Below, piece after piece: positions 6,023 to 60,310 of a stretch of DNA of 64,000 nt (positions are counted from its first letter, which is position 1; every line of letters starts with the position of its first letter). The position numbers and the translations under genes are program-made. Location: contig CM074813.1 of the NCBI GenBank assembly GCA_037447605.1, positions 2,790,001 through 2,854,000 of the forward strand, read 5' to 3'. The notes beneath the pieces are model-generated. The model saw only the letters and a list, made by a program, of their open reading frames with translations, searched no databases and was not told the DNA's origin. Source of the DNA: Zygnema circumcarinatum SAG 698-1b (Eukaryota > Plantae > Zygnematophyceae).

Positions 6023-10352
<4,330 letters not shown>

Positions 10353-11220: not shown

Positions 11221-14200
11221 TTACTTCTTACTTTGGCGAGTTGTTTTATGGTGCGCCTTCTTGCTCCCCTCTGCCTTGGTGCCTTCCTCTACGGTCGCTC
11301 CATTCTTCTCCTGCAGGATTGAAAGCAGAATGACAGATTTGGGTTAACGTCGTGTTCTTTCTCAAAGTTCTCTACCACTTTCTCCACCCTAAAAAATGGA
11401 GGGCGAGCTTCAAGCCACAGAGGATTACGAAAGTGCTGCGCTTTTGAAGCACTTCGGGTCTCGGGAACCCTAAAAGGTCAAGGTACCCTAAGTTTTGAAA
11501 AACTTGAACTCTAATCCCCTTCAAGTGGAGGATCGAATGCTCCCGTACATTGTCGGACAGTCAAAGCTCCTCATCCATACAAGACAGCCGTTGAACATGT
11601 CATTATTGAATCAGCGGGTCAAGCAGATCTCAAACTTCCCACCTCTGAAATTGACATATTCACAAGCTCTCCTCACAATGGTGCTTCCATATCTCTCGTG
11701 TGAGCCTTTACAGAAATCACCTCTGAGTGCAGAACTTCAATCACCGTCTCCGCTTGCACAATGGCTCCCTTCAGCTGCTCCACAACCTCCTGTTCCTCCT
11801 GCAGAGCTCCGCTTGTCTGTTCCAGCTTCGCTTTAGCTGTGCCCAAAGCCCGTTGCTCAGTTTCCAGCAGGCCCTTAGTCTCCAGAAGCTCAGTTTTCAG
11901 CTCTGCATTCTTCGCCTTCAGAGCCCGCAGCTCTGCAATCATCTCCGCCCTACCCTTTTCCGTCACCTTCTGCTGCTCCTTCAGATCGCCATTCCTCCCA
12001 TTCACCTTCTCAAGCTCCTTCACAACGTGCTCGTATTTCCGCTGCGTCTCTACCAACGCAGCCTCCAACTCAGGAATTTTGCTCTGAACCTGCGTCAGCT
12101 CCGTTCTCAGTTTCGTAATTTCCGCTCTCGCTTCTTCCACTTCTCTCTCCTTCTCCTCGATCTGACTGCTCTTCAACTCTACCGCATCTGTCAGCTGCCG
12201 GTTCACTCGCCTCTCACTCTCCAAATCCTCACGCAGACTCGTCATCTGCTCATCCAAATGCTCCCACTGCCCACTCCTCTCCTTCACTGCCTGGTCTGCT
12301 GCACTGAGGGCCTCTGCAAGCTCCCCAATTTCTGCCTTTTTCTGAGTCAACTCCTTCAGCGCCATAGTCAACTCACCATGGATATGCTCCACCTCCTTAG
12401 CTGTCTTGTTAAGCTCGCTCCTTGTATTCTCCTCCCGTTCTGCTACTGCAGCGACCTCTCCCTCCAAGCCCTTCAACTTCTCCTCTGCCGCAGCTTTGGC
12501 GCGTTCCACCTCCTCAAGGCTACCTTTCACCTGCACTACCTCCTTCTCCATCTCCGCATACTTGCTCTCTATCTTTGCCAATTCACCTTGTGCTTGGGCT
12601 GCTTCCTGTTTCTTTTCTTCCACTGCTCTAGAGTACTCCTCAGTCTTACTATGCATCGCGTTCATCTCCTCTACCTTCGCAGCTATTTCTGTCTCTTTTC
12701 CCTTCACCAACTCCTCCAGCTCCCTCACTTTTGCAAGACTCCCTTTCAACTCCTCCTCCTTTGCAGCCATTTCTGTTTCCTTTCCCTTCACCAGCTCTTC
12801 CAGCTCCCTCACGTTTGCAAGGCTACCTTTCAACTCTTCCTCCTTCGCAGCCATTTCTGTCTCTTTTCCTTTCACCAACTCTTCCAGCTCCCTCACTTTT
12901 GCAAGGCTCCCTTTCAACTCCTCCTCCTTCGCAGTCATTTCTGTTTCCTTTCCCTTCACCAGCTCCTCCAGCTCTCTCACTTTTGCAAGGCTAACTTTCA
13001 ACTCCTCCTTAGCAGCCTCCAGACTTGCATTCAGCTCCTTCACCTTCTCATTACTCTGTGCTAGTTCTGCAGAAAGTCGGCTCATATCTTCACTCAAAGC
13101 TCGCTCTCTTGTGTCTGCCTCTGCCAGTCTCACCCCCAATGCAGCCTTTTCGGATTCCGAAGATTTCAATTGCTCCTTGTAATTGGCCATCTGCTGTTCA
13201 AGCTCCTTAGTCACTTTCTGACGGCCTTCAAGCTGGCGGGCGAGAGATTTGCCTGCAACCAATAAAGCGCAAACATTTTTTGTCAACACTTATCAATTAT
13301 ATACTAATTTGTAATGATAAAACAGCCCAGCCCAGCTTTGAGGATACTTCACACTTCAAGATTTCAGTATCCATAGCTGAAGTGAAGCTCCTCTACCTTC
13401 CATTTAGCTAAATCCTGTTTAAGTGTTCCATGTGAAACGAAATTAGCTCGACTGTATAAAAAAATGATCATGAACTCTTACTGTTCGCCTCTTGTGCTGC
13501 AAGCAGGTCTGCCAGCTCTTTTTTCTGCTTTTGTGCATTATCACCCTCTTTCCGTGCCTTTGCCTCCAAAGCATTGAGCTGCTCTCCAAGCGAAGCTTTC
13601 AGGGCTAGAGCTTCCGCATCTTTCTGCTTCAAAGCTCCGTCCTTTTTCGTCAGCTCCTCCGCGGTCTGCCCCCCCCCCCACTACATCATACTTTCAGAAA
13701 AGTCCTTCGTAGAATTTTGACTTTCGGAGCAGTATAGAACGAACGCATGCATGAAACCCTTCCGAACACGGAGCAATTTCTAATTCATCCATTGAAAAGC
13801 TTAGCTTAGACAGCATATGCAAGTCAAAAGACTTCTTGCTTACCGCCGCGCTTTTCTGTTTCTCTGTGAACCAAAGACCCCCAAAGATTGCTGTTGGAAG
13901 GCCTGTCACAGCCAGGCTTGACAGCCAGCCCCCTCCGCTCGCAGTCTGGCAATGAATATCAATAAAAATGATTAAATTAATAGTCATAAGTTCCGGAAAG
14001 TGGCTCCACAAGACGAGGACAATCCGTTATCAAAAGGATAAGGAGACAGACTGTAGCATTGGTGCAGAGAGAGAGGGAGAGAAAGAGAGAGAGAGAGAAT
14101 GGAGAGAGAGAGGGGGGGAGGGAGAGTATAGAGGAGTGCGTTGCAGGATTCACGATGTTGTAGAAAAGTGTACTTGGCTTATGTCTTGAGCTCAAAGGAA

Positions 14201-17164: not shown

Positions 17165-17290
17165 GCCACGTGTCTAACGGATCCACTATACCACGTCATT
17201 TGCTAGAATCTTGTGCCTATCCGTAGGGGTCCACGTTCCCAATAAGAGCGTGCCACGTGTCGCCTGCGGATCCAGCCGGCAGCCAATCAG
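17165..17290. promoter_or_regulatory. G-box/CCAAT cluster upstream of MFP1, including CCAAT-N9-CCACG at 17239-17257
   Basis: GCCACGTGTC at ~17165 and ~17252, CCACGTCA, CCACGTT and AGCCAATCAG within ~125 bp. Confidence 0.5.
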
Positions 17291-18217: not shown

Positions 18218-20331
18218 TCTTCCATTCCCTCACATGAAGTAGGGACTCGATGTATTCTCCTTCACCGTCTCCACCCGCGCGAGCTGCTCCACCACCTCCC
18301 ACCCCTCCAGGACACGCCCCACGACCAGGTTCGTCTCATCCAATTCCGGCGCGTCCTCTCTCAAAATTACGAACTCCGTTCCGTTGGGCGGCGCTCGGGC
18401 GATCTCTTCCACCATCACAAACTGGCCGTTCCTTGCGATCAGTTTGGGCTTCGGGGGAGGGATGGTGGGGTCCGCCACTATGAGGGATACAGCACGGGCC
18501 ACATTCTTAAGGGCACCCTCTTGTCTCCTACAGGCACCCCACATGCCAATTCATCCTGAAATTAGGGTTGCAGGGCTTTTCAAGATCCCTAACGAACAAA
18601 GAAACGTGCAGTTTCCCCCCCAAAATTCAACAAAAGTTTCCTATGCATGCATGCATGGTGCATGGGGCGCATGCTCACATGGAAATGGCATTCAGTTCCT
18701 CGACCAGTCGGTCCGCCGTCTCTCCCCCTGTGAACTGAGCGGTGTCGCGGTCACCTCCCGTGACGGAGAAACTGCGCAAGCCCGCGTTTTGGATGTACTT
18801 TGGAAATATTTTGATAAATTCTTTTCGGCGATAAGAGACGCCGCGACGGCCCTTTGCAAGTTCAGCGAATCTTGTTGCGCCAATGGGAACATCCTGCAGG
18901 CGAAGGACGAGTATGGTTTCTGAGGAAGCTTAAGCGTAGATAGGGAGAGAGAGGGAGAGGGGAGGGGGTGGAGGATAGGGGCAGGGACTAGAGAGGGGGG
19001 ACATTGGAGGAGAGAGAGAGAGGGTGGGGAAGGAGAAAGTCGGAGAATAGAGAGAGAGTGCATTGAAAGAAAGAGAGGAGGGGAGAGAGAGGGAGAGAGA
19101 GGGAGAGAGAGGTGGGGAGGAGAGGGGCAGTGAATAAAGAGGGGGCATTGGAGGAGAGAGAGAGAGAGGGTGGGGAAGGAGAGAGTCGGAGAATAGGGAG
19201 CGAGTGCATCGAAAGGAAGAGAGAGTGGGGGAGAGAGAGGGAGAAAGGGGGGGAGGAGAGGGGCAGTGAATAATGGGGGGGGCATTGGAGGAGAGAGAGA
19301 GAGAGGGTGGGGAAGGAGAGAGTCGGAGAATAGGGAGCGAGTGCATCGAAAGAAAGAGAGAGAGGGGGAGAGAGAGGGAGAGAGATGGAGAGAGGGGGGG
19401 GACGAGGAGAAAGTGAACGTGAGGAAGAAGATGCGTAAAAAAAAAAAAACCGAATTTCCCGTCTCATCAGAAATCCCAAGTTTCCTGAACCCTAAATGCC
19501 CCCTAAACCCTACGCTCAAAACTCTAAACCCTGAATCTCTGCTGCTTTCACCCTGATCTAAAAACTTTGAACCCTTCAACCCTCGCCCTTCAACCCTTTG
19601 ACTCTAGGCCCTGAACCCTTAAACCCTAGCCCCTGAACCCTTCAACCCTAGCCCCTAAAACCTTCAACCCTAGCTCCTCAACCCTTCAACCCTAGCCCTT
19701 GAACCCTTAAATCCTAGCTCCTGAACCCTTCAACCCTCGCCCTTCAACCCTTAAACCCTCGCCCCTGAACCCTAATCAGTGTTCCCACCTTGCCGTACAG
19801 TCCGATGACGATTCTGCCCACGTTCTGTCGGTCGATGGCGACATCCAAAAAGACTTTTTGCGTCACCGCCGGCCCCGCCCCCGCCCCCGCGCTCTCCGCC
19901 TCGGCTGCCACGTAGCCCTCTGGAGCGGCCTCGGCCGCTACGGACGAATCAGAGCTCGCTTCTGCGACCATGGCGGGCTCCTCGGCCAATGTCGCATTGC
20001 CACGTGGTAGATCCTCATCTGCCAGCGCCCGTTGCGAGAAGCTGGAGGCGGAGAAAGACGTCCACGTGGCAACACCAGCGACGAGGGTTCTTCGGTTGAC
20101 AGCTGTCAGCAGAGGGGGAAGCGGATACACGTGGCACTCCTCACCCGAGGAGGGTCCACGTGGCTCACTGACGTGGCTGGGCGCATTTCTCCTGGTCTCA
20201 GCATGCGCCACGCGGCAAACCTGCACTTGCAGAGCTTTTCCTTGCCTCTGCGGAGACAGCAGCTTCCCGCCACCTGGCAACTCCGCCACGTGGCAGGGCC
20301 GCAGGCCGCCACGTGGCAGTGCGCTCAGCAT
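17800..20331 (-). CDS. CYP26-2: Chloroplast (thylakoid lumen) cyclophilin-type PPIase CYP26-2. Exons 20331(or 20397)-19789, 18893-18679, 18527-18234, 17899-17800; ~383 aa
   Basis: VTQKVFLDVAIDRQNVGRIVIGLYGK|DVPIGATRF...VSYRRKEFIKI...PPPKPKLIARNG...PNGTEFVI...VVGRVLEG...ENTSSPYFM|AAKLIGDSRAVVAERGFNRPYSKV; RR lumenal signal (NRRTLVAG...RALA). Confidence 0.93.
18995..19380. repeat. ~140-bp purine-rich tandem repeat x3 in CYP26-2 intron 1
   Basis: cattggaggagagag...gggtggggaaggagagagtcggagaatag...gagtgcat(t/c)gaaag recurs at ~19002, ~19146 and ~19284. Confidence 0.8.
19486..19773. repeat. Degenerate interstitial telomere-like array (AACCCT-core, ~22-bp higher-order unit) in CYP26-2 intron 1
   Basis: Repeated aacccttcaaccctagcccctg / aaaccctag units. 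Confidence 0.75.
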
Positions 20332-23977: not shown

Positions 23978-24368
23978 TAGGGATGGATTAGTTACGACTA
24001 TATAATATATATTATATTATACAACTGTGACGACTAGATAACGGCTGATATAGTGATATATATTAATTTACAACGCTTTTACAACATGTACGGTAATACG
24101 GTCGTACGACTGTACGGTATTATGCGGCCCGAGCACGAGCAGACAGAGAAAACCAGACGAACGCATTTCGCAACGCCAACGCCAAAACGACCTAATTTTG
24201 GTATGGTACGACCGTATGACCGTACGAGTACGATCGTACGGTAGTTAATTGTTCAAAACGAATGGGTATAATATATGTAATAAAGTGTTTTACTTTAATA
24301 TATTACTAATTTTAAACCCGTTGTAAATTATATAATATATTCGGAATTTATAACGCGGGCCATCCCTA
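23978..24368. mobile_element. Non-autonomous hAT (Ac/Ds-like) MITE, 391 bp
   Basis: TIR TAGGGATGG (23978-23986) / CCATCCCTA (24360-24368); perfect 8-bp TSD ACCCCAAT (23970-23977 and 24369-24376); internal CGTACG/ACGAC subterminal-type motifs. TAGGGATG ends and an 8-bp TSD are hAT hallmarks. Confidence 0.9.
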
Positions 24369-24509
24369 ACCCCAATATGGAATTCCGAATTCCGATTTCC
24401 AAATTACGGAATTCCGATTTCCGAATTACGGAATTTCGCTCAGAGGCGTTCCCAGGTCCCAAAAGTTCGGTCCGTATCAAAGCGCGCCGACCGACAGCTG
24501 TGTCGTCGT

Positions 24510-24686
24510 CACGTGGCGAGTGCTGAGGGGTGGCACGTCCCTGCGCGTGCCACGTGGCTATTGGTGCACACGTGTCGAATCCAAAAGGTACCAAATGCAC
24601 CGACACACGCAACGTGGCGAGTACTGTGCGCTCGATCGCGCCGGCGCCACGTGGCGCCTGTCGGTGGAGCGCGTCCTGCCACGTAC
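24510..24686 (+). promoter_or_regulatory. Dense ABRE/G-box cluster upstream of the orphan gene
   Basis: 7 ACGT cores in ~175 bp, including CACGTGGC x3, CACGTGTC, AACGTGGC and a CGCGTG (CE3-like); probable 5'UTR-intron donor GTAAGT at ~24892. Confidence 0.65.
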
Positions 24687-25587
24687 GCCAACTGCCAGTG
24701 TCGGTGCGCAGAGACAGGGCTCGAGGGAGAGGGCTGACGGGGAGGGAGAGGGACAGGGAGAGGGACAGGGAGAGGGAGAGGGGAGAGGCAGAGGGAGAGG
24801 GAGGGAGAGGGAGCGAGGGAGAGGGAGAGAGAGGGAGGGAGAAGGGGAGGAAGAGGGAGAAAGAGAGAGGGAGGGAGAGCGGCTGACAAGTGTAAGTAAA
24901 GCGGAAGGTAGGGGTTTAGAACTTTAGGGGGGGAGAGGTTTTGGGGCGGGAGGGCAGGCAGCGAGCGCTGAAAGGTGGAACGGGCAGAGGAAGAGAGGGC
25001 AGAGGGATGCGAAGAGGTGTAGGAAATGTATGTGAGGGTGGGTGCAGGGGAGGAGAGGAGGGAGAGCAGAGGAAAGAGGGGCAAGTAAGATGGAAGGGGG
25101 CTTACATTAGGTCTGTAGAAGAGGAGAAATGAGAAGAGAAAGGACGGGCAGAGGAGATAGTAGAGAGCATAGAGGAGGAGAAGAGAGGAGGGAGGATGGA
25201 AGAATGGGAAGCGAGTGGTGTCTTTCCGTGCTTGTTTTTTGTCTCTTCTATCGCTGCAATGATTTCAACCAGCCTCCCTTTCTTCCTCCCTCTCTCCTCT
25301 CGCCCTCCCCACAGTTTTCTCATCTCCCTCTCTCCTCGCCCCTTTCTATTCCCCCTCTCCCTGTCCCTCTCCCCTCTATCCTCCTCCCCAGATTCCCCTC
25401 TTTCTTTCCCACTTTTCTCACCCCCTCTCCCCTATACCCTCCCCCCCAAGCCTCCCCTTGCTACCTCTCCCCTTTTCCCCTTCTCCCGCTCTCTTCCTCT
25501 CTCCCTCTATCCTTCCCTCCCCCATCCCCCCCCCCCCTTCCCTGGTGCGCTGAAACGAGTTCCCTGCCTTCCTTGCAGGCTGCAGAG

Positions 25588-25707
25588 ATGGACGAGCCGA
25601 TATATGTTTCCTTCAGACGGGTGGTTCTGGTGGGCTCAGACACCCACTTTTCGTCGTTTACTCTTTTTCTTCGTTTCTATGTCTGTGTGTGAGAGACAGA
25701 GAATAGA

Positions 25708-25750
<43 letters not shown>

Positions 25751-27094
25751 AGGGAGAGAGAGTGAGAGGATTCCTCCCTCTTATGTTAACAAGAGCTGAT
25801 GGTTTGCGCGGCTTTTGCAGATGTTCGCGGGAGCGGTGACTTTGGGCTCCACGGCTCCCATTGCGCCTCTCCTTCTCTTCAGTGGGGCCGTCGGCTTCTT
25901 CTTGGCACTTCCATGGATCGTGTTTCTGTATTGTGCTCGAGCAGCGCTGGTGAGGGGTGCAGCTCTACTGCTGTTTGATGACTGCAGTGAAATTATTTTG
26001 TGGGCTTTTTTCATTTTGTAAGTATTGTATTTGAACCCACCACCCTCCCCCTTTTCATAAGGTTTTTTTTTGTTTTTCTTATGTAGATTTTTGTCGACTC
26101 CGTACTACATCGGTCGAGCCGTTCTCGATATCGCAGCTCGCGAAAAGGTGGTTTGAAGGAGACAGCGAAAGTTGTGCCCTTAGACGTAAGTGCTTCCGCA
26201 GACGTAAACTTCACTTCTTGCCGATAATCTTTGACGTTTACTCGCTTTAAGGTTGAAAGGATCATCGTACGCTCGTTTAATTTTCTATTTTAATCCGCTG
26301 TATGTGCTGGACCTGCGGGATTGGCTCCTTTGAAAGTTTTACTTTATCTTTGTTTGGCTCTGTTCATTTTTTTAAGTTATTTTTGTATGTGCTCTCTGTT
26401 CTGAAAACTGCAGGAACGAGAGGAGGAGAAGATGCAGAAACTGAAGCGGAAGGAGCATCAATCGAGGGAGAAGCGGGAAAGGCTGGCAAGGAAGCAGCAA
26501 GAGGAGAGGAGGGAGAGAGAGAGACTTATTAAGAAGCGTCAGGAGGAGGAGGAGAAGAGGAGAGAGGGAGAGAGGCTGATGCTGCAACAGAAGCAGGCTC
26601 ATGAAGAAGCTGAAAGGATGGAGAGAGAGAGAGTTGAACGAGAACGCTACGAGGAGGAAGAAAAGAGGCTGAAGCAGCTCCAAGAGGAGGAGGCGGTGAG
26701 GAGGAGAGAGAACATCGTGAAAGCCCATTACGAGGAGGAGAAGGAGAAGAAAATAGAGCATTTGAAGTATCTTCAAGAGGTGCAACAGAGGGAGAGGGAG
26801 AGAGAGATTCGTGTAAAGAAGCTTCAGGAGGAAGATGAAAGGAGGCGGAGGCTCCTAAAGGAGGAAGAGGAGAAGAGGCTCGAACAACAGCGATACGCGG
26901 AAGAGAGGGCGAGAGAGAGAGCACGGGAGGAGGAGGAGGAGAGGGAGAGAGGGAGACTCGAGAGGGAGCAAGAGCAAGAGGAGGACGAGAGCTCGAGCTC
27001 GAGCGACGACGACGACAAGGATGACAAACACGACGGAGAGAAGCATCCCAAAATTAAGAGGTTCATTCGAAAGATTGTGAACAAGATCAAATGA
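25588..27094 (+). CDS. Uncharacterised protein: N-terminal ~50-aa hydrophobic hairpin, ~190-aa E/R/K-rich helix, poly-S/acidic patch, basic amphipathic C-terminus. Exons 25588-25620, 25821-25949, 26087-26185, 26414-27094; ~313 aa
   Basis: Four phase-0 GT-AG-bounded exons join into one ORF: MDEPIYVSFRR|MFAGAVTLGSTAPIAPLLLFSGAVGFFLALPWIVFLYCARAAL|IFVDSVLHRSSRSRYRSSRKGGLKETAKVVPLD|EREEEKMQKL...SSSSSDDDDKDDKHDGEKHPKIKRFIRKIVNKIK*. The start codon is uncertain. Confidence 0.72.
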
Positions 27095-28186
27095 ACTTTA
27101 AAGTGTAGAGCTGTAACATACGTCGAAGCTCAGATGTGATGTAACATGTACCAACATAACCAGCACCATTAAATAAGCGGTGGGTTGTCCTGATGAAGGG
27201 GAGAGACTGCGTATGGTTCAAGCAGGGTAGGAGTGGGTGGGAGGGGTTCTGTGGTTGATCAGAGAATCGTTCAAGCAGCAAACTTTGTGTCTTAGTATGG
27301 TCCTTTTGTAGGGTTCTAGTCAGACTTGTAATTGGTACGTCATCACTACGTATGGTGAATCTTTTCGTTATTCTCCTTGGAAGAAGTGAGAAAGACAATG
27401 CAGGCTGTACATTTGTTGACTAAGGGGACTGCTTCCTCCGTTGGGGGGGGTTCAATGGCACAAAACTGAACTGAAACTGGAACTGAGATATATGTTTTCA
27501 ACCCTGCTCTGGCCTTTTATGTCTATCGTTCACTCTCTCTCCCCCCACCCCTCTCACTCTTTCTCTCTCTTTTTTGCGGTAAAAGAATTCACGCTTTCGA
27601 TTTGTTGATGTGTACTTTCAGTGCAGGTGACAATAATACAGAAAATGTGATGCAAGGGCAACCTAAGTACCAAAAAAAAAATCATGATAATAATAAAATG
27701 TTTTCGACAGAAAATGTACAACAGTTTATTGAACTTGTCACAAATTAATGGAAGATGTAACCGATTTGAACACATATCGGAGGTCCTCACTACGTGCAAA
27801 ATATTTCGGCCATACCCACAAGCTGTGGATAAAAAAAAAAAAAAAAAAAAGAATAGATGCAGCGCTAGAAACTACAAGCAATTTAGTACACAGCTTCTCC
27901 AACTTACAGCAAGCCTTTGATAAGCATGTCACTCCCCTCCCTCCCCACCCCTCTCTCTCTCCTCCTACTCCTCTCCCAGGAACAAACCCATTATTCCAAA
28001 TTGGTGAGGAAAGGAAGGAGGAAAGGAGGGCGAATGAAGACTGGGAAGAAGTAGGAGTGGTAGGAAAAGGAGGCAGCGAGAGAGAAAGAATGAATAAAGC
28101 GAGAGAGATAGAGAGAGACAGAAAGAGAGAGAGCGTGAGTGAGAGGAAGAGGAAGCGAAGAGGAAGGAGATTTGAAGAGAGAGGCA

Positions 28187-28286: not shown

Positions 28287-30848
28287 CTATGGTCTGTATC
28301 GGAAAGTTCGGTCTTTGCGACTCCGCAGAAGCTGAATGAGAGCCTGTGCTCCTGTCCTCCCTCGCTGTGCGCCCAACGAGAGGCGGACAAGTGGCAGCAT
28401 CACGCCCTCAGATAGCATAGCCTCCCCTGCTCCTGGAACGTATGTGGCCAGAGCCAACAGGCATGTGGCAGCATCCTCCATAGCGCGCCTAGAAGCACCT
28501 TCCAAGACGTCCGCAAGGATAGCGACACCTCCCTCCTCATATATAGCCACTCGCCCTTCGCTTACTTGCGCAAGCTTCGCCAATACAGCCACAGCCTTTT
28601 CCTCTAAGTCCACATCCAAAGCGAGACCAAGCAGGACCTTTACAGCTCCCACAGAAACGATCTCCCTCGCAGAGCCGGGATCGAGGGATAAATTAAACAG
28701 AGCAAGAGCAGCATCTTTTTTACCTCTCAAAGAAGAAATTTTGAGCACCTTCACAAGGCGTCTAACGCCACCCGCCAACCGAATAAGCACACATGCATCC
28801 TTGCTTGAAGAGAGGCAAAAAAGGGACGCTGCAGCGTTTTCCGAAATGGGGCAGCTTTCGTGCTCAAGAAGGTCAACTAAAGCATCAATTCCGCCGACTG
28901 TTATCACCTCCTCTCGGCACTTCTCCCCACTAAGAGAGAGGTTTAAAATCGTTGTAACTGCATTCTCTATTATCTCCACATCGTTGTGCTGCAGGAGAGC
29001 AACGAGAGGTTCAATCCCTCCTGCAGCAATAACTCTCATCTTGTTCTTCGGTTGATTCTTCACAAGATTCCGAAGTCTCCGAAGGGCTAATTTCCTCACC
29101 TCTCCTTTACTTTCTTGAATTGCGTCAACCAAACCTGAAATAATCTCCGCTTCATCTCCACCAAATACGACCCCTTCCCTTTCGGCAATATAGGGCTCTG
29201 CCTCCCCATTTGATGGCATAGAAACTGCTCTTGCAAGTGAAAAAGACCCATCTTTTGACATAGGCAGAGACAATGTTCTCACAAGCCCGGGTGATCTCCT
29301 TTTCTGAACTTCCGACAACTTCAACAGACAGTAAGCAGCATCTTCTTTTGCCCGAGCTGAACCTCTTTCTAAAACCTTCTGTAAAACAGAAGCTGCTTCC
29401 TTCTCATAGAGAGCGGCACAACCCTCACTCATACGACACAAATTACGCAAAGTTGCAGTAACTTTCTCCTCAAGAGCAGGATCAAGAGCCAAGCTTAGAA
29501 GCACATCTACTGCCCCTTCGTAAACTATGTCACCTGCACACACACCTTCTGCAGAAAGATTCATAAGCACTGTAGCTGCATCTTTCTTGCCCCTCAGAGA
29601 CCCCTCCTCCAACATAACAATTAGAGGTTTAATCGCTCCCGCAACCCAAATTAGGGTTTTGGCTTCCTCATCATGGCAGAGAGTGACCAGCACTGAAGTC
29701 GCTGCTTCAACAAGTGACGGCTGCTTCCCTCTCTCCATCACTTGCACCAAATTTTTGATCCCACCTGCACCCAAAATTTGGGATTGGCAGTTCTCTGTGA
29801 GAGCTAAGTTGAGAAGTGTCACGACTGCGTCCTCCACAATGCTGACGTCAGCTGACTTCAGCAATGCTACCAGTGGGGGTATCCCTCCTGCTTTCACTAC
29901 TTCGAATTTTTTCTCCGGAAGGTCCTTTACAACTTCCCGTAGAATATGAACAGCGGTTTTTTTCGACTCAGCATTATACTCCTGCAAGTTTTGCACAAGC
30001 ACAGCGATCATGTTGTCTCCTGCCACATCCCAAACTGTGGAAGAAGCTGAACTAGTCCCGGCTAAGTTCACACCACTCGATACTCTCGATTCAACTTCGC
30101 CGGAAGAAAATAGACTATCAGTCAAAGGATCGTCTATCCCAAATTCGCTGAACTCATCTGCTCCCCAAGAGAGAGTCCGCCCCCTTCTCGCTGTTGCATC
30201 ACTGTACTTAGAAAAAGTTGCAGTTTCAGTTACTCCACTGGCTGCTTTAAGAGTTACATCTGAATTTTCCACATTTGCCATTTCTTTCTTGAGTTGTCTG
30301 CTCAAATCCTGGTCGTTAAGTGTTCGACTCCTCGTTAAAAACCCTCCCCCTACTGCACAGCCCCCAATTCCCTGTAAGCGTCCCTCTACAACTACACCTG
30401 CTTTCCGGCGATTAGCAGGGGGCATCTTACTGCGACTGCAAGGAGAGGAGGAATTCATGTGTCTCATATTCTCCTCTGTATGAACGAAATTTGAAGGCCA
30501 AATGGGGCAAACTGGGCTTTTAGGTGCGAGCCTTATAGTGCTTTCGGAGGACTCGAACTCCCAAGAATTACTGCTCCCATTGCCGCCGTAACTGCTTTTG
30601 CTTTCCAACAAAGTGGAGCGCTTCTCGGATATTTTGGTGCTTTTTGACTTCTCCTGGCCACCCCAAAGAGGCGAACTTGGCCACCTCAGCGCTCTCTTAA
30701 GCTGCCACGTGGCTCCGCCTGCATCGACAGTTGACGTGGGGCTGATCGTCGGACTCGGAGTGCTTTCTGATGACGCACTCGTTCCACGTCGCGAGTCTCG
30801 AGGTCCACCTCCAACTCCCGCCCAATAATTTTCCGCTAGCTGCGACAT
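28287..30848 (-). CDS. Intronless armadillo-repeat protein with two tandem PUB-type ARM domains and no recognisable U-box; 853 aa
   Basis: Single long ORF; motifs AGGIPPLVALL...AVVTLLNL, GSLRGKKDAA and LEEK each occur twice; Ser-rich disordered N-terminus (~275 aa). Confidence 0.9.
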   Translation of the reverse strand: MSQLAENYWAGVGGGPRDSRRGTSASSESTPSPTISPTSTVDAGGATWQLKRALRWPSSPLWGGQEKSKSTKISEKRSTLLESKSSYGGNGSSNSWEFESSESTIRLAPKSPVCPIWPSNFVHTEENMRHMNSSSPCSRSKMPPANRRKAGVVVEGRLQGIGGCAVGGGFLTRSRTLNDQDLSRQLKKEMANVENSDVTLKAASGVTETATFSKYSDATARRGRTLSWGADEFSEFGIDDPLTDSLFSSGEVESRVSSGVNLAGTSSASSTVWDVAGDNMIAVLVQNLQEYNAESKKTAVHILREVVKDLPEKKFEVVKAGGIPPLVALLKSADVSIVEDAVVTLLNLALTENCQSQILGAGGIKNLVQVMERGKQPSLVEAATSVLVTLCHDEEAKTLIWVAGAIKPLIVMLEEGSLRGKKDAATVLMNLSAEGVCAGDIVYEGAVDVLLSLALDPALEEKVTATLRNLCRMSEGCAALYEKEAASVLQKVLERGSARAKEDAAYCLLKLSEVQKRRSPGLVRTLSLPMSKDGSFSLARAVSMPSNGEAEPYIAEREGVVFGGDEAEIISGLVDAIQESKGEVRKLALRRLRNLVKNQPKNKMRVIAAGGIEPLVALLQHNDVEIIENAVTTILNLSLSGEKCREEVITVGGIDALVDLLEHESCPISENAAASLFCLSSSKDACVLIRLAGGVRRLVKVLKISSLRGKKDAALALFNLSLDPGSAREIVSVGAVKVLLGLALDVDLEEKAVAVLAKLAQVSEGRVAIYEEGGVAILADVLEGASRRAMEDAATCLLALATYVPGAGEAMLSEGVMLPLVRLSLGAQRGRTGAQALIQLLRSRKDRTFRYRP

Positions 30849-31644: not shown

Positions 31645-32370
31645 GTCCGTACACTTCCAGCCGTTGGTCACTTGGGCCGTTGCATCTTGTCGTTTCGAGA
31701 TTCATACCATAGAGGAAGCCGTACAATATTGTACACGCATGATTGTACGGTCGGCGCTCGTGGAAGGGAATTTGCAGCGGGGTCAAGCAAAAGCCAATCA
31801 GTAAGTGTCACGTGTAGAAATTGTACCACGTGTCGGAATGTGATTGGTCGGATTTGGGCCCACCTTTCTCCAAGTCGACAGACGATAGAGGCACAAGCAA
31901 ATTGACACGTGGTTTGTGCTAATTCGCCCGAATAGGATAGAACTGGCAATTATTCGATTTCTTTGGAGCGTTGAAGCATAGAACATGCACTGCTTAGAGA
32001 TGTTCCTCTTCGAGCACGCGACACGTGTCATGTATGGCGCCGACCAATTTCCCAAATACCCGGGGCTCCCCCGTTTGTCCCATGTGCGGAGCGTACGGAC
32101 GACATGTTGGCCGGCCGCCGGTCAAAGGGACACTTCCAGAAGCGCTGACCGCAATGATTGGGACCTGGAACTGTACGGATCTGTTCCGTAAGGACTGAGA
32201 CCGTACACAATTCGATACGATACATAGATGCAACATTAATATTGCGATACGATACACAGATATATCTTCAATATTCCGACTGGATGAAGAGATATATCTT
32301 AAATTATGCGATACGATATTTCAACATACGTCGACAGAGTACTGGCACTGTACGGTCGATCGCGGTACCG
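31645..32370. promoter_or_regulatory. Divergent promoter ARM/VPS13 with inverted CCAAT-N10-CACG pair (31794-31847), G-boxes and CGTAC motifs
   Basis: CCAAT-N10-CACGTG on + (31794-31814) and on - (31847-31827); further CACGTG at ~31906 and ~32022; about 11 GTAC cores. Confidence 0.55.
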
Positions 32371-32844: not shown

Positions 32845-59585
<26,741 letters not shown>

Positions 59586-59869: not shown

Positions 59870-60310
59870 GCTCATTGGCTCACCTACGGCACGAAATTTT
59901 AAGCCAGTCCGACCAATCCCAGTGGATATTCACACATCTAAAAAAAATATTGGCAGCCAATCACCATGCAGCATCCCACGCGCGAGGTATCCAGAACTGG
60001 ATCGTCCCACCGTCCTGCAACGCGTCCTCAACGCAGTCTCGAGAAGATACCGCACCGTCCCCACCTCCCCTTGCCGCCTCCTCTCGGAGAGCGCCACGTG
60101 TTGGTCCCTCCACAGCCTGCTCCCTCCCCACATGTGGCGCCCTCGCCACATGGCATCACGATCTATTGACACGTGGAGGTTTCACCACGTGGCACTTCTA
60201 GCTGCATGACACGTGGCGAGCTGCAGCAGGACGCCTAGGGTGTAGAGACGACAGCTACCCCCCCAGACCGCCGGAAACCCTAACCCTAAAATTTCTGAAC
60301 CCTAATTTTT
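59870..60310 (+). promoter_or_regulatory. GPT promoter region: CCAAT boxes, four CACGTG G-boxes and telo-box (AAACCCTA)
   Basis: CCAAT/ATTGG at ~59875-59961; CACGTG at ~60095, 60170, 60186 and 60210; AAACCCTAACCCTAAA at ~60275. Confidence 0.5.

Follow-up and report, generated by a model that had tools for sequence, protein, structure and literature searches.

We analyzed a 64,000-nucleotide stretch of the streptophyte alga Zygnema circumcarinatum SAG 698-1b (GenBank assembly GCA_037447605.1, contig CM074813.1, positions 2,790,001 to 2,854,000 of the forward strand). This whole stretch is referred to here as the window, and all positions are counted from its first letter. On the forward strand, the window carries a gene whose coding sequence (25588–25629, 25821–25949, 26087–26185, and 26414–27094) specifies a 316-residue protein with a hydrophobic N-terminal segment, a long region rich in Glu, Arg, and Lys (E/R/K), and a basic amphipathic C-terminus. 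The gene is real, spliced, and abundantly transcribed. An initial annotation had proposed that the product is a one-chain tether between lipid droplets and a membrane, and each element that it described was found in the sequence where it had been placed.

Gene model and transcripts

Contigs from four public runs, belonging to two studies, were placed on positions 25100–27500. The run type was guessed to be RNA, and because the contigs are intron-less with canonical intron ends, the runs contain spliced transcripts. The three joints between coding exons (25629|25821, 25949|26087, and 26185|26414) are all of the GT..AG type and were found in contigs of all four runs. The coding exons are 42, 129, 99, and 681 nt long and contribute 14, 43, 33, and 226 residues; each length is a multiple of three, and all introns are in phase 0. 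The hydrophobic exons are therefore joined in frame to the charged exon, as the initial annotation had supposed; a failure of this joining was among the grounds that it had named for giving up its proposal. Its donor for the first coding exon, placed near 25620, was 9 nt too early, as the true donor lies at 25629/25630.

The exon with the start codon spans 25579..25629, with the acceptor at 25578/25579 and the donor both taken from contigs. It encodes MDEPIYVSFRRVVL from the ATG at 25588, which lies in the context GCAGAGATGG. The loose 5′ ends of contigs starting at 25577–25579 match a single place, 24877–24892, and there is therefore a non-coding exon ending at 24907 that is spliced to the acceptor at 25578/25579. 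This untranslated 5′ exon is GA-rich, reaches at least as far back as ~24861, and ends at 24907 ahead of a donor GT at 24908; the true start is farther upstream. The known 56 nt of the 5′ untranslated region (UTR) contain no ATG, the context of the ATG at 25588 is good, and an in-frame TAA precedes it when the frame is read back across the 5′ junction. Exon 2 (25821..25949; from contigs, translation, and AlphaFold2) encodes 43 hydrophobic residues. Exon 3 (26087..26185) carries the end of the hydrophobic zone, followed by an RS-rich basic linker (HRSSRSRYRSSRK...) with a net charge of about +5 to +7. Frame 0 of exon 4 runs for 226 codons without a stop where 9.4 stops would be expected, and none of 20,000 nucleotide shuffles was free of stops; the other two frames hold 10 and 7. 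The 3′ UTR occupies 27095..27462. One contig stops at 27462 and continues as sequencing adapter (GATCGGAAGAGC), which suggests a 3′ UTR of ~370 nt.

Contig depth over the exons was ~1000–2000 in the three 2024 runs vs ~13 in the 2019 run. This ~100-fold gap over 25579–27462 may reflect condition-dependent expression, which contigs cannot prove. Intron 3 is retained at ~1% of exon depth (contig 26157–26443, at a depth of 12–18 vs ~1300). Additionally, part of the first intron (25100–25505) is covered in three runs by contigs of low depth (35–70 vs ~1000 or more for the exons), which may come from unspliced precursor or from a separate weak transcript.

N-terminal hydrophobic segment

The protein has an uncharged run of 42 residues (12–53), made of exon 2 plus VVL before it and IFV after it. 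A lone Arg stands at position 54, and the hydrophobic zone reaches residue 60. The Kyte-Doolittle mean over 19 residues rises to 2.24 in this region. Such a zone is far too long for a cleavable signal peptide, which we ruled out. The flank on the C-terminal side (residues 54–85) has a net charge of +7 vs 0 on the N-terminal side; because the flank after the hydrophobic zone is strongly basic, the positive-inside rule would place the C-terminal part of the protein in the cytosol.

Prolines are found at positions 27, 30, and 45, with a helix break at S24-T25-A26-P27. The AlphaFold2 model of exon 2 alone has helices at its residues 2–11 and 14–42, which correspond to residues 16–25 and 28–56 (29 residues) of the protein. 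We estimated insertion energies as a crude, position-independent sum on the Hessa scale. Only residues 31–53 gave a sum near 0 kcal/mol, which is transmembrane (TM)-like but marginal; residues 12–30 scored about +5 kcal/mol, as did 19-residue windows with first residues from 11 to 23. The initial annotation had judged the segment too long for one TM span and read it as a hairpin. The length stands at 42 uncharged residues, but the hairpin does not follow from it when only residues 31–53 are TM-like. These models fit either an asymmetric monotopic hairpin or one marginal span whose N-terminal segment is translocated or lies at the interface.

The same data bear on a reading of the product as a signal-anchored protein in the outer membrane of plastids or mitochondria or in the nuclear envelope, in which the charged rod described below would serve in organelle positioning, as in CHUP1, or in envelope spacing. 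Signal anchors of plant outer membranes consist of a TM-like segment followed by a basic flank, and this is the arrangement of residues 31–53 and the strongly basic stretch after them. Furthermore, the RS-rich motif is reminiscent of nuclear targeting sequences, as are the KR...K-rich stretches. However, a hydrophobic zone of 42–49 residues exceeds that of typical signal anchors, and neither Pfam nor phmmer gave homology to CHUP1, LBR, or similar proteins. We consider this reading quite unlikely.

The hydrophobic zone invites comparison with oleosins and other class I droplet hairpins, with which it shares a long, uncharged, proline-containing segment. Unlike oleosins, it has no 72-residue hairpin and no PX5SPX3P proline knot, its break is off-centre, and the zone spans only 42–49 residues. 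Membership in the oleosin family (PF01277) was rejected, as there was no Pfam match.

A charged region predicted to form a single long helix

The E/R/K-rich region (26414..26989, forward strand) encodes residues 91–282 and is predicted to form a single helix of ~188 residues. At 0.15 nm per residue, this gives a length of ~28 nm. Counted over residues 91–283 (193 residues), 128 are charged (66 acidic, 62 basic; 66%) and 30 are I, L, V, M, F, W, or Y. Pairs of opposite charge at i+3/i+4 occur at 0.249 per residue vs 0.004 in shuffles (z = 3.7). The AlphaFold2 model of exon 4 shows one unbroken helix over exon residues 2–189, with a predicted local distance difference test (pLDDT) score mostly above 90.

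The Fourier power of hydrophobicity at a period of 3.5 is 0.10, vs a 95% shuffle level of 0.45, and no 28-residue window has more than 4 of 8 a/d positions occupied. Because there is no 3.5 periodicity and a/d occupancy is low, the region is best described as a single alpha-helix (SAH) rather than a coiled coil, which we rejected since the heptad signal is absent. The initial annotation had likewise called the region an ER/K single helix, and the predicted helix, the SAH-type composition, the lack of a coiled coil, and the salt-bridge excess all bear this out. Its "alternating blocks" of charge do not hold: like-charge runs average 1.56 residues, and E and R/K are finely mixed. No charge periodicity with a period of ~6–9 was significant (maximum spectral power of 3.35 vs a shuffle mean of 2.96).

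Known ER/K SAH domains are found in myosin VI, in myosin X, and in a Trichomonas Kelch-motif protein that has been used as a 30-nm linker. Like these domains, the region is high in E, R, and K, has i/i+4 salt bridges within the helix, lacks a hydrophobic seam, and would extend over tens of nm. Unlike them, it has finely mixed charges without E4K4 blocks and ~15% hydrophobic residues, and its monomeric helix is a prediction.

Ser/Asp patch and terminal amphipathic helix

The E/R/K-rich region is followed by the patch SSSSSDDDD (26990..27016; residues 283–291, as read from the sequence). It lies in a 23-residue acidic stretch that is predicted to be disordered (AlphaFold2 pLDDT below 50). The protein ends with the helix KIKRFIRKIVNKIK and the stop codon (27050..27094; residues 303–316). 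AlphaFold2 places this helix at exon-4 residues 213–225. It has a net charge of +7 and a hydrophobic moment of 0.91, the highest in the protein and matched by 0.3% of shuffles. All six of its Ile, Phe, and Val residues fall inside a 140-degree arc (40–180 degrees), with Lys and Arg on the opposite arc. The polybasic amphipathic tail that had been proposed is thus present, with segregated faces. A basic helix with a segregated hydrophobic face is also what characterizes known polybasic amphipathic C-terminal anchors, namely LIPA residues 107–134, the Ist2 CSS, and the remorin anchor.

A promoter cluster of G-boxes

Just upstream of the true first exon lies a cluster of seven ACGT cores (24510..24686, forward strand), four of which are perfect CACGTG G-boxes and several of which have the form of the abscisic acid (ABA)-responsive element (ABRE), ACGTGGC or ACGTGTC. 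The cluster is ~40–350 bp upstream of the GA-rich exon. No other 250-bp bin in the window is as dense in these elements: ACGTGKC has 8 strand hits here vs 5 in the next bin. Over the whole window, ACGTGKC occurs 51 times vs 3.6 expected (14-fold). Other clusters of ACGTGGC/ACGTGTC were seen at 19907–20317, 60093–60217, 17165–17261, 6114–6132, and 31828–32029, and the element seems to be a common promoter element of this genome. The initial annotation had linked an ABRE cluster to induction by stress; the cluster exists, but induction is only hinted at, as other promoters also carry such clusters. The cluster hints at bZIP control, by stress or by light, which is not proof of ABA induction.

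This promoter, together with the C-terminus, bears on another reading, in which the product is a membrane-anchored protectant of the dehydrin or LEA type: a highly hydrophilic helical protein that water stress would induce and that would shield or stabilize the membrane in which it is anchored, the Ser run and the Lys-rich helix taking the part of S and K segments. As in dehydrins, a Ser run is followed by acidic residues and then by an amphipathic, Lys-rich helix with the potential to bind anionic membranes, and the promoter is ABRE-rich, holding the densest ABRE-type cluster of the window. The ~100-fold depth gap between the two studies (13 vs ~1000–2000) hints at condition dependence, but contig depth is a poor measure of expression level and conditions. 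Dehydrins are disordered and soluble, whereas this protein is predicted to be membrane-anchored and to have a long rigid helix. Furthermore, no Pfam dehydrin or LEA profile matched even at E = 10, and we rejected membership in the dehydrin family (PF00257; no match at E up to 10). We regard this reading as rather unlikely.

Search for relatives

We searched for relatives exon by exon, which limits the power of the searches, as the hydrophobic exon has only 43 residues and exon 4 is of low complexity. Pfam, searched with every exon at E up to 10, matched no family. A phmmer search with exon 2 against 1.84 billion representatives returned no plant protein and no true match, although a single 43-residue query has low power. 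One entry, P0001 (1822 aa, a translated satellite-like repeat), reached E = 6.6e-11 from 13 weak stretches against the 43-residue query and was rejected as an artefact. Word-index searches with all of exon 4, with its tail (residues 170–226), and with its middle (residues 84–135) returned nothing. In a local self-test, an identical entry would score 372 bits; the product is therefore absent from the word-index collection. Exact look-ups in a collection of 15 billion proteins showed that the product is not on record there.

The ESM Atlas gave no usable match for exon 2 or exon 4, and a metagenome scan gave 599 pattern matches, none of which was confirmed. A sequence search of the PDB found just V-ATPase subunit D and laminin, both as weak matches of the coil type. 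Rfam, run over the whole 64-kb window, found nothing, and local tblastn searches of the window with the joined N-terminal 90 residues and with residues 276–316 found no paralogue. The protein is an orphan in the Pfam, phmmer, word-index, ESM Atlas, metagenome, and PDB searches, as the initial annotation had it, and no confident match to an unrelated known family arose in Pfam or phmmer.

A candidate single-chain tether or spacer

We favor the reading that the product is a single-chain tether or spacer anchored in a membrane or lipid droplet, with the donor organelle left unspecified, and give it a probability of roughly one in three (0.35). The architecture is real and unusual, and its layout is the one generally seen in single-chain membrane tethers. 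On this reading, in which topology, helix stiffness, lipid binding, tethering, and regulation are what we infer from the observed gene model, transcription, and sequence properties, residues 12–60 would anchor the N-terminus in a membrane or in a lipid-droplet monolayer. The cytosolic part would then run from the flexible RS-rich linker through the stiff ~188-residue helix (~28 nm) and the acidic Ser/Asp patch to the +7 amphipathic helix, which could bind anionic lipid surfaces. In this way, the home compartment, which would be the endoplasmic reticulum (ER) by prior expectation and possibly lipid droplets, might be kept at a constant separation of ~30 nm from the plasma membrane or another anionic membrane. 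When phosphorylated, the Ser/Asp patch could act as an electrostatic brake by masking the basic tail, and transcription would probably be driven by bZIP factors on the G-box/ABRE cluster.

Similar plans are known elsewhere. The single-chain tethers between ER and plasma membrane, namely yeast Ist2, STIM1/2, and the junctophilins, have an anchor, a long spacer, and a basic or lipid-binding end that together bridge 10–30 nm; in Ist2 this end is an amphipathic polybasic helix, and the junctophilin spacer is long and alpha-helical. The Zygnema product shares this plan of anchor, spacer, and basic lipid-binding end. It has no homology to these proteins, which unlike it have true TM anchors (with several spans in Ist2, and as a tail anchor at the C-terminus in junctophilin), and the spacer of Ist2 is disordered rather than a rigid ER/K helix.

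Another parallel is the tether between lipid droplets and the plasma membrane that Arabidopsis SLDP1/SLDP2 (AT1G65090, AT5G36100) form with LIPA. SLDPs reach lipid droplets via an amphipathic helix and ~40 uncharged residues near the N-terminus (residues 31–69 and 25–62), and LIPA reaches the plasma membrane through its polybasic C-terminal region, residues 107–134 (PMC9134073). Droplet proteins of streptophyte algae are associated with stress or with a "seed programme," and the physiological role of tethering droplets to the plasma membrane in a lineage near the origin of land plants is still unknown (PMC13247531). The product resembles SLDPs in having an uncharged N-terminal stretch and a hydrophilic remainder, resembles LIPA in its polybasic end, and its promoter is in keeping with expression under stress or a "seed programme." Unlike the Arabidopsis system, in which two proteins act via a coiled-coil contact, both ends would be on one chain here, and a single alpha-helix is predicted for the spacer in place of a region that binds a partner.

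The initial annotation had gone further and suggested that the product could have an SLDP-related hairpin and tie lipid droplets to the plasma membrane, one chain thus doing the work of both SLDP and LIPA. This is a special case of the tether, and it gains from the ~40 uncharged hydrophobic residues near the N-terminus (residues 12–53), a 42-residue proline-containing stretch that matches the SLDP targeting feature (PMC9134073), from the parallel between the polybasic tail and LIPA residues 107–134, and from the fit of an ABRE-rich promoter with the droplet-protein programme (PMC13247531). The marginal hydrophobicity and the STAP helix break would also suit a monolayer hairpin. However, the amphipathic helix that precedes the hydrophobic stretch in SLDPs is lacking: just 11 residues come before it, with a moment of 0.32–0.37 vs 0.91 in the tail. 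The RR-MF pattern that had been likened to SLDPs does not exist as an adjacency, since it straddles the misplaced splice site; the true reading is ...SFRRVVL|MFAG..., with VVL in between. The proline break is off-centre, leaving arms of ~14 and ~29 residues, no plant protein matched the 43-residue query among the 1.84 billion representatives, and the reviews consulted contain no report of an SLDP in algae. The link to SLDP is a resemblance of features only, and we find this version improbable. A more elaborate reading, a tether from lipid droplet (or ER) to plasma membrane with a rigid ~28-nm ER/K ruler, desiccation-type induction through bZIP factors and ABREs, and a phospho-gated Ser/Asp patch, as a one-chain algal equivalent of SLDP plus LIPA, we consider very improbable.

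Several points weigh against the single-chain tether or spacer. The 316-residue product is itself a prediction from the genome and transcript contigs, and the depth of those contigs says little about how strongly, or when, the gene is expressed. Nothing in the sequence tells whether the anchor would sit in a lipid droplet, in the ER, in the outer membrane of an organelle, or in the nuclear envelope, and the tail could bind its own membrane in cis. The textbook charge periodicity of the E4K4 type is not present in the rod. The AlphaFold2 models were made from single sequences, and long helices are the default for such a composition. With no homologue detected in the searches described above, the sequence gives no sign of conservation or selection. 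Finally, purines account for 78% of the DNA of exon 4, a bias present at all three codon positions, 32 of its 43 Arg codons are AGG or AGA, and the genome is rich in GA repeats, so that the E/R/K tract could be a by-product of purine-rich DNA.

This last point leads to the main rival, a young, lineage-restricted gene without a tethering role, whose E/R/K tract would be translated purine-rich, low-complexity DNA attached to a hydrophobic leader. The purine bias of exon 4, third codon positions included, speaks for such an origin, GA and GAGGGA repeats flank the gene and occur within it, and the product is an orphan in every search, as well as not on record among the 15 billion proteins. Set against this are four exons precisely spliced and all in phase 0, a very high contig depth in three runs, and a frame that stays open where 9.4 stops are expected. 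Furthermore, the non-repetitive, ordered amphipathic tail and the salt-bridge excess do not come from composition alone. We take this origin as a serious possibility, though a doubtful one.

If the tether is real, the protein would act as a small natural ruler at a membrane contact site, with a single anchor, a stiff helix of defined length, and a lipid-binding end, and changing the length of the helix would make the ruler easy to test. The gene also belongs to a lineage near the point from which land plants arose. If it is instead a young low-complexity gene, it would illustrate an origin of ER/K helices from purine-rich repeats. For now, this is a candidate architecture with no known relatives, and its value is mainly that of a clean, testable candidate.

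Repeats and neighboring genes

The window is eukaryotic in appearance, with GT..AG introns, numerous GA/CT microsatellites, and several ORFs of plant-like character (described below). A (GAGGGA)n purine tract at 24723–24879 coincides with the first exon and the transcription-start region of the gene, and a CT-rich pyrimidine tract of ~300 bp lies in the first intron (25240–25540). The two tracts form a mirror-like pair and could adopt unusual DNA structures. Just 5′ of the G-box cluster is a 22-bp tandem repeat (GAATTCCGATTTCCAAATTACG, 2.2 copies; 24380–24435), and at 24090–24250, also upstream of the cluster, the DNA is AT-rich and crowded with words resembling CGTACGG/GTACGACCGTA.

Contigs of another transcript start right after 27470. 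On the reverse strand, an intron-less open reading frame (ORF) of 853 aa (28287–30848) converges on the 3′ end of the gene and strongly matches Armadillo, ARMC5, and PUB-type ARM repeats (E = 5e-43). ORFs at 11673–13289 (reverse strand), 6023–7060 (forward strand), and 35473–36045 (forward strand) have ATG16-type coiled-coil, Pre-SET/SET, and VPS13 N-terminal matches, respectively. The VPS13 gene appears to cover much of the region from 35 to 58 kb.

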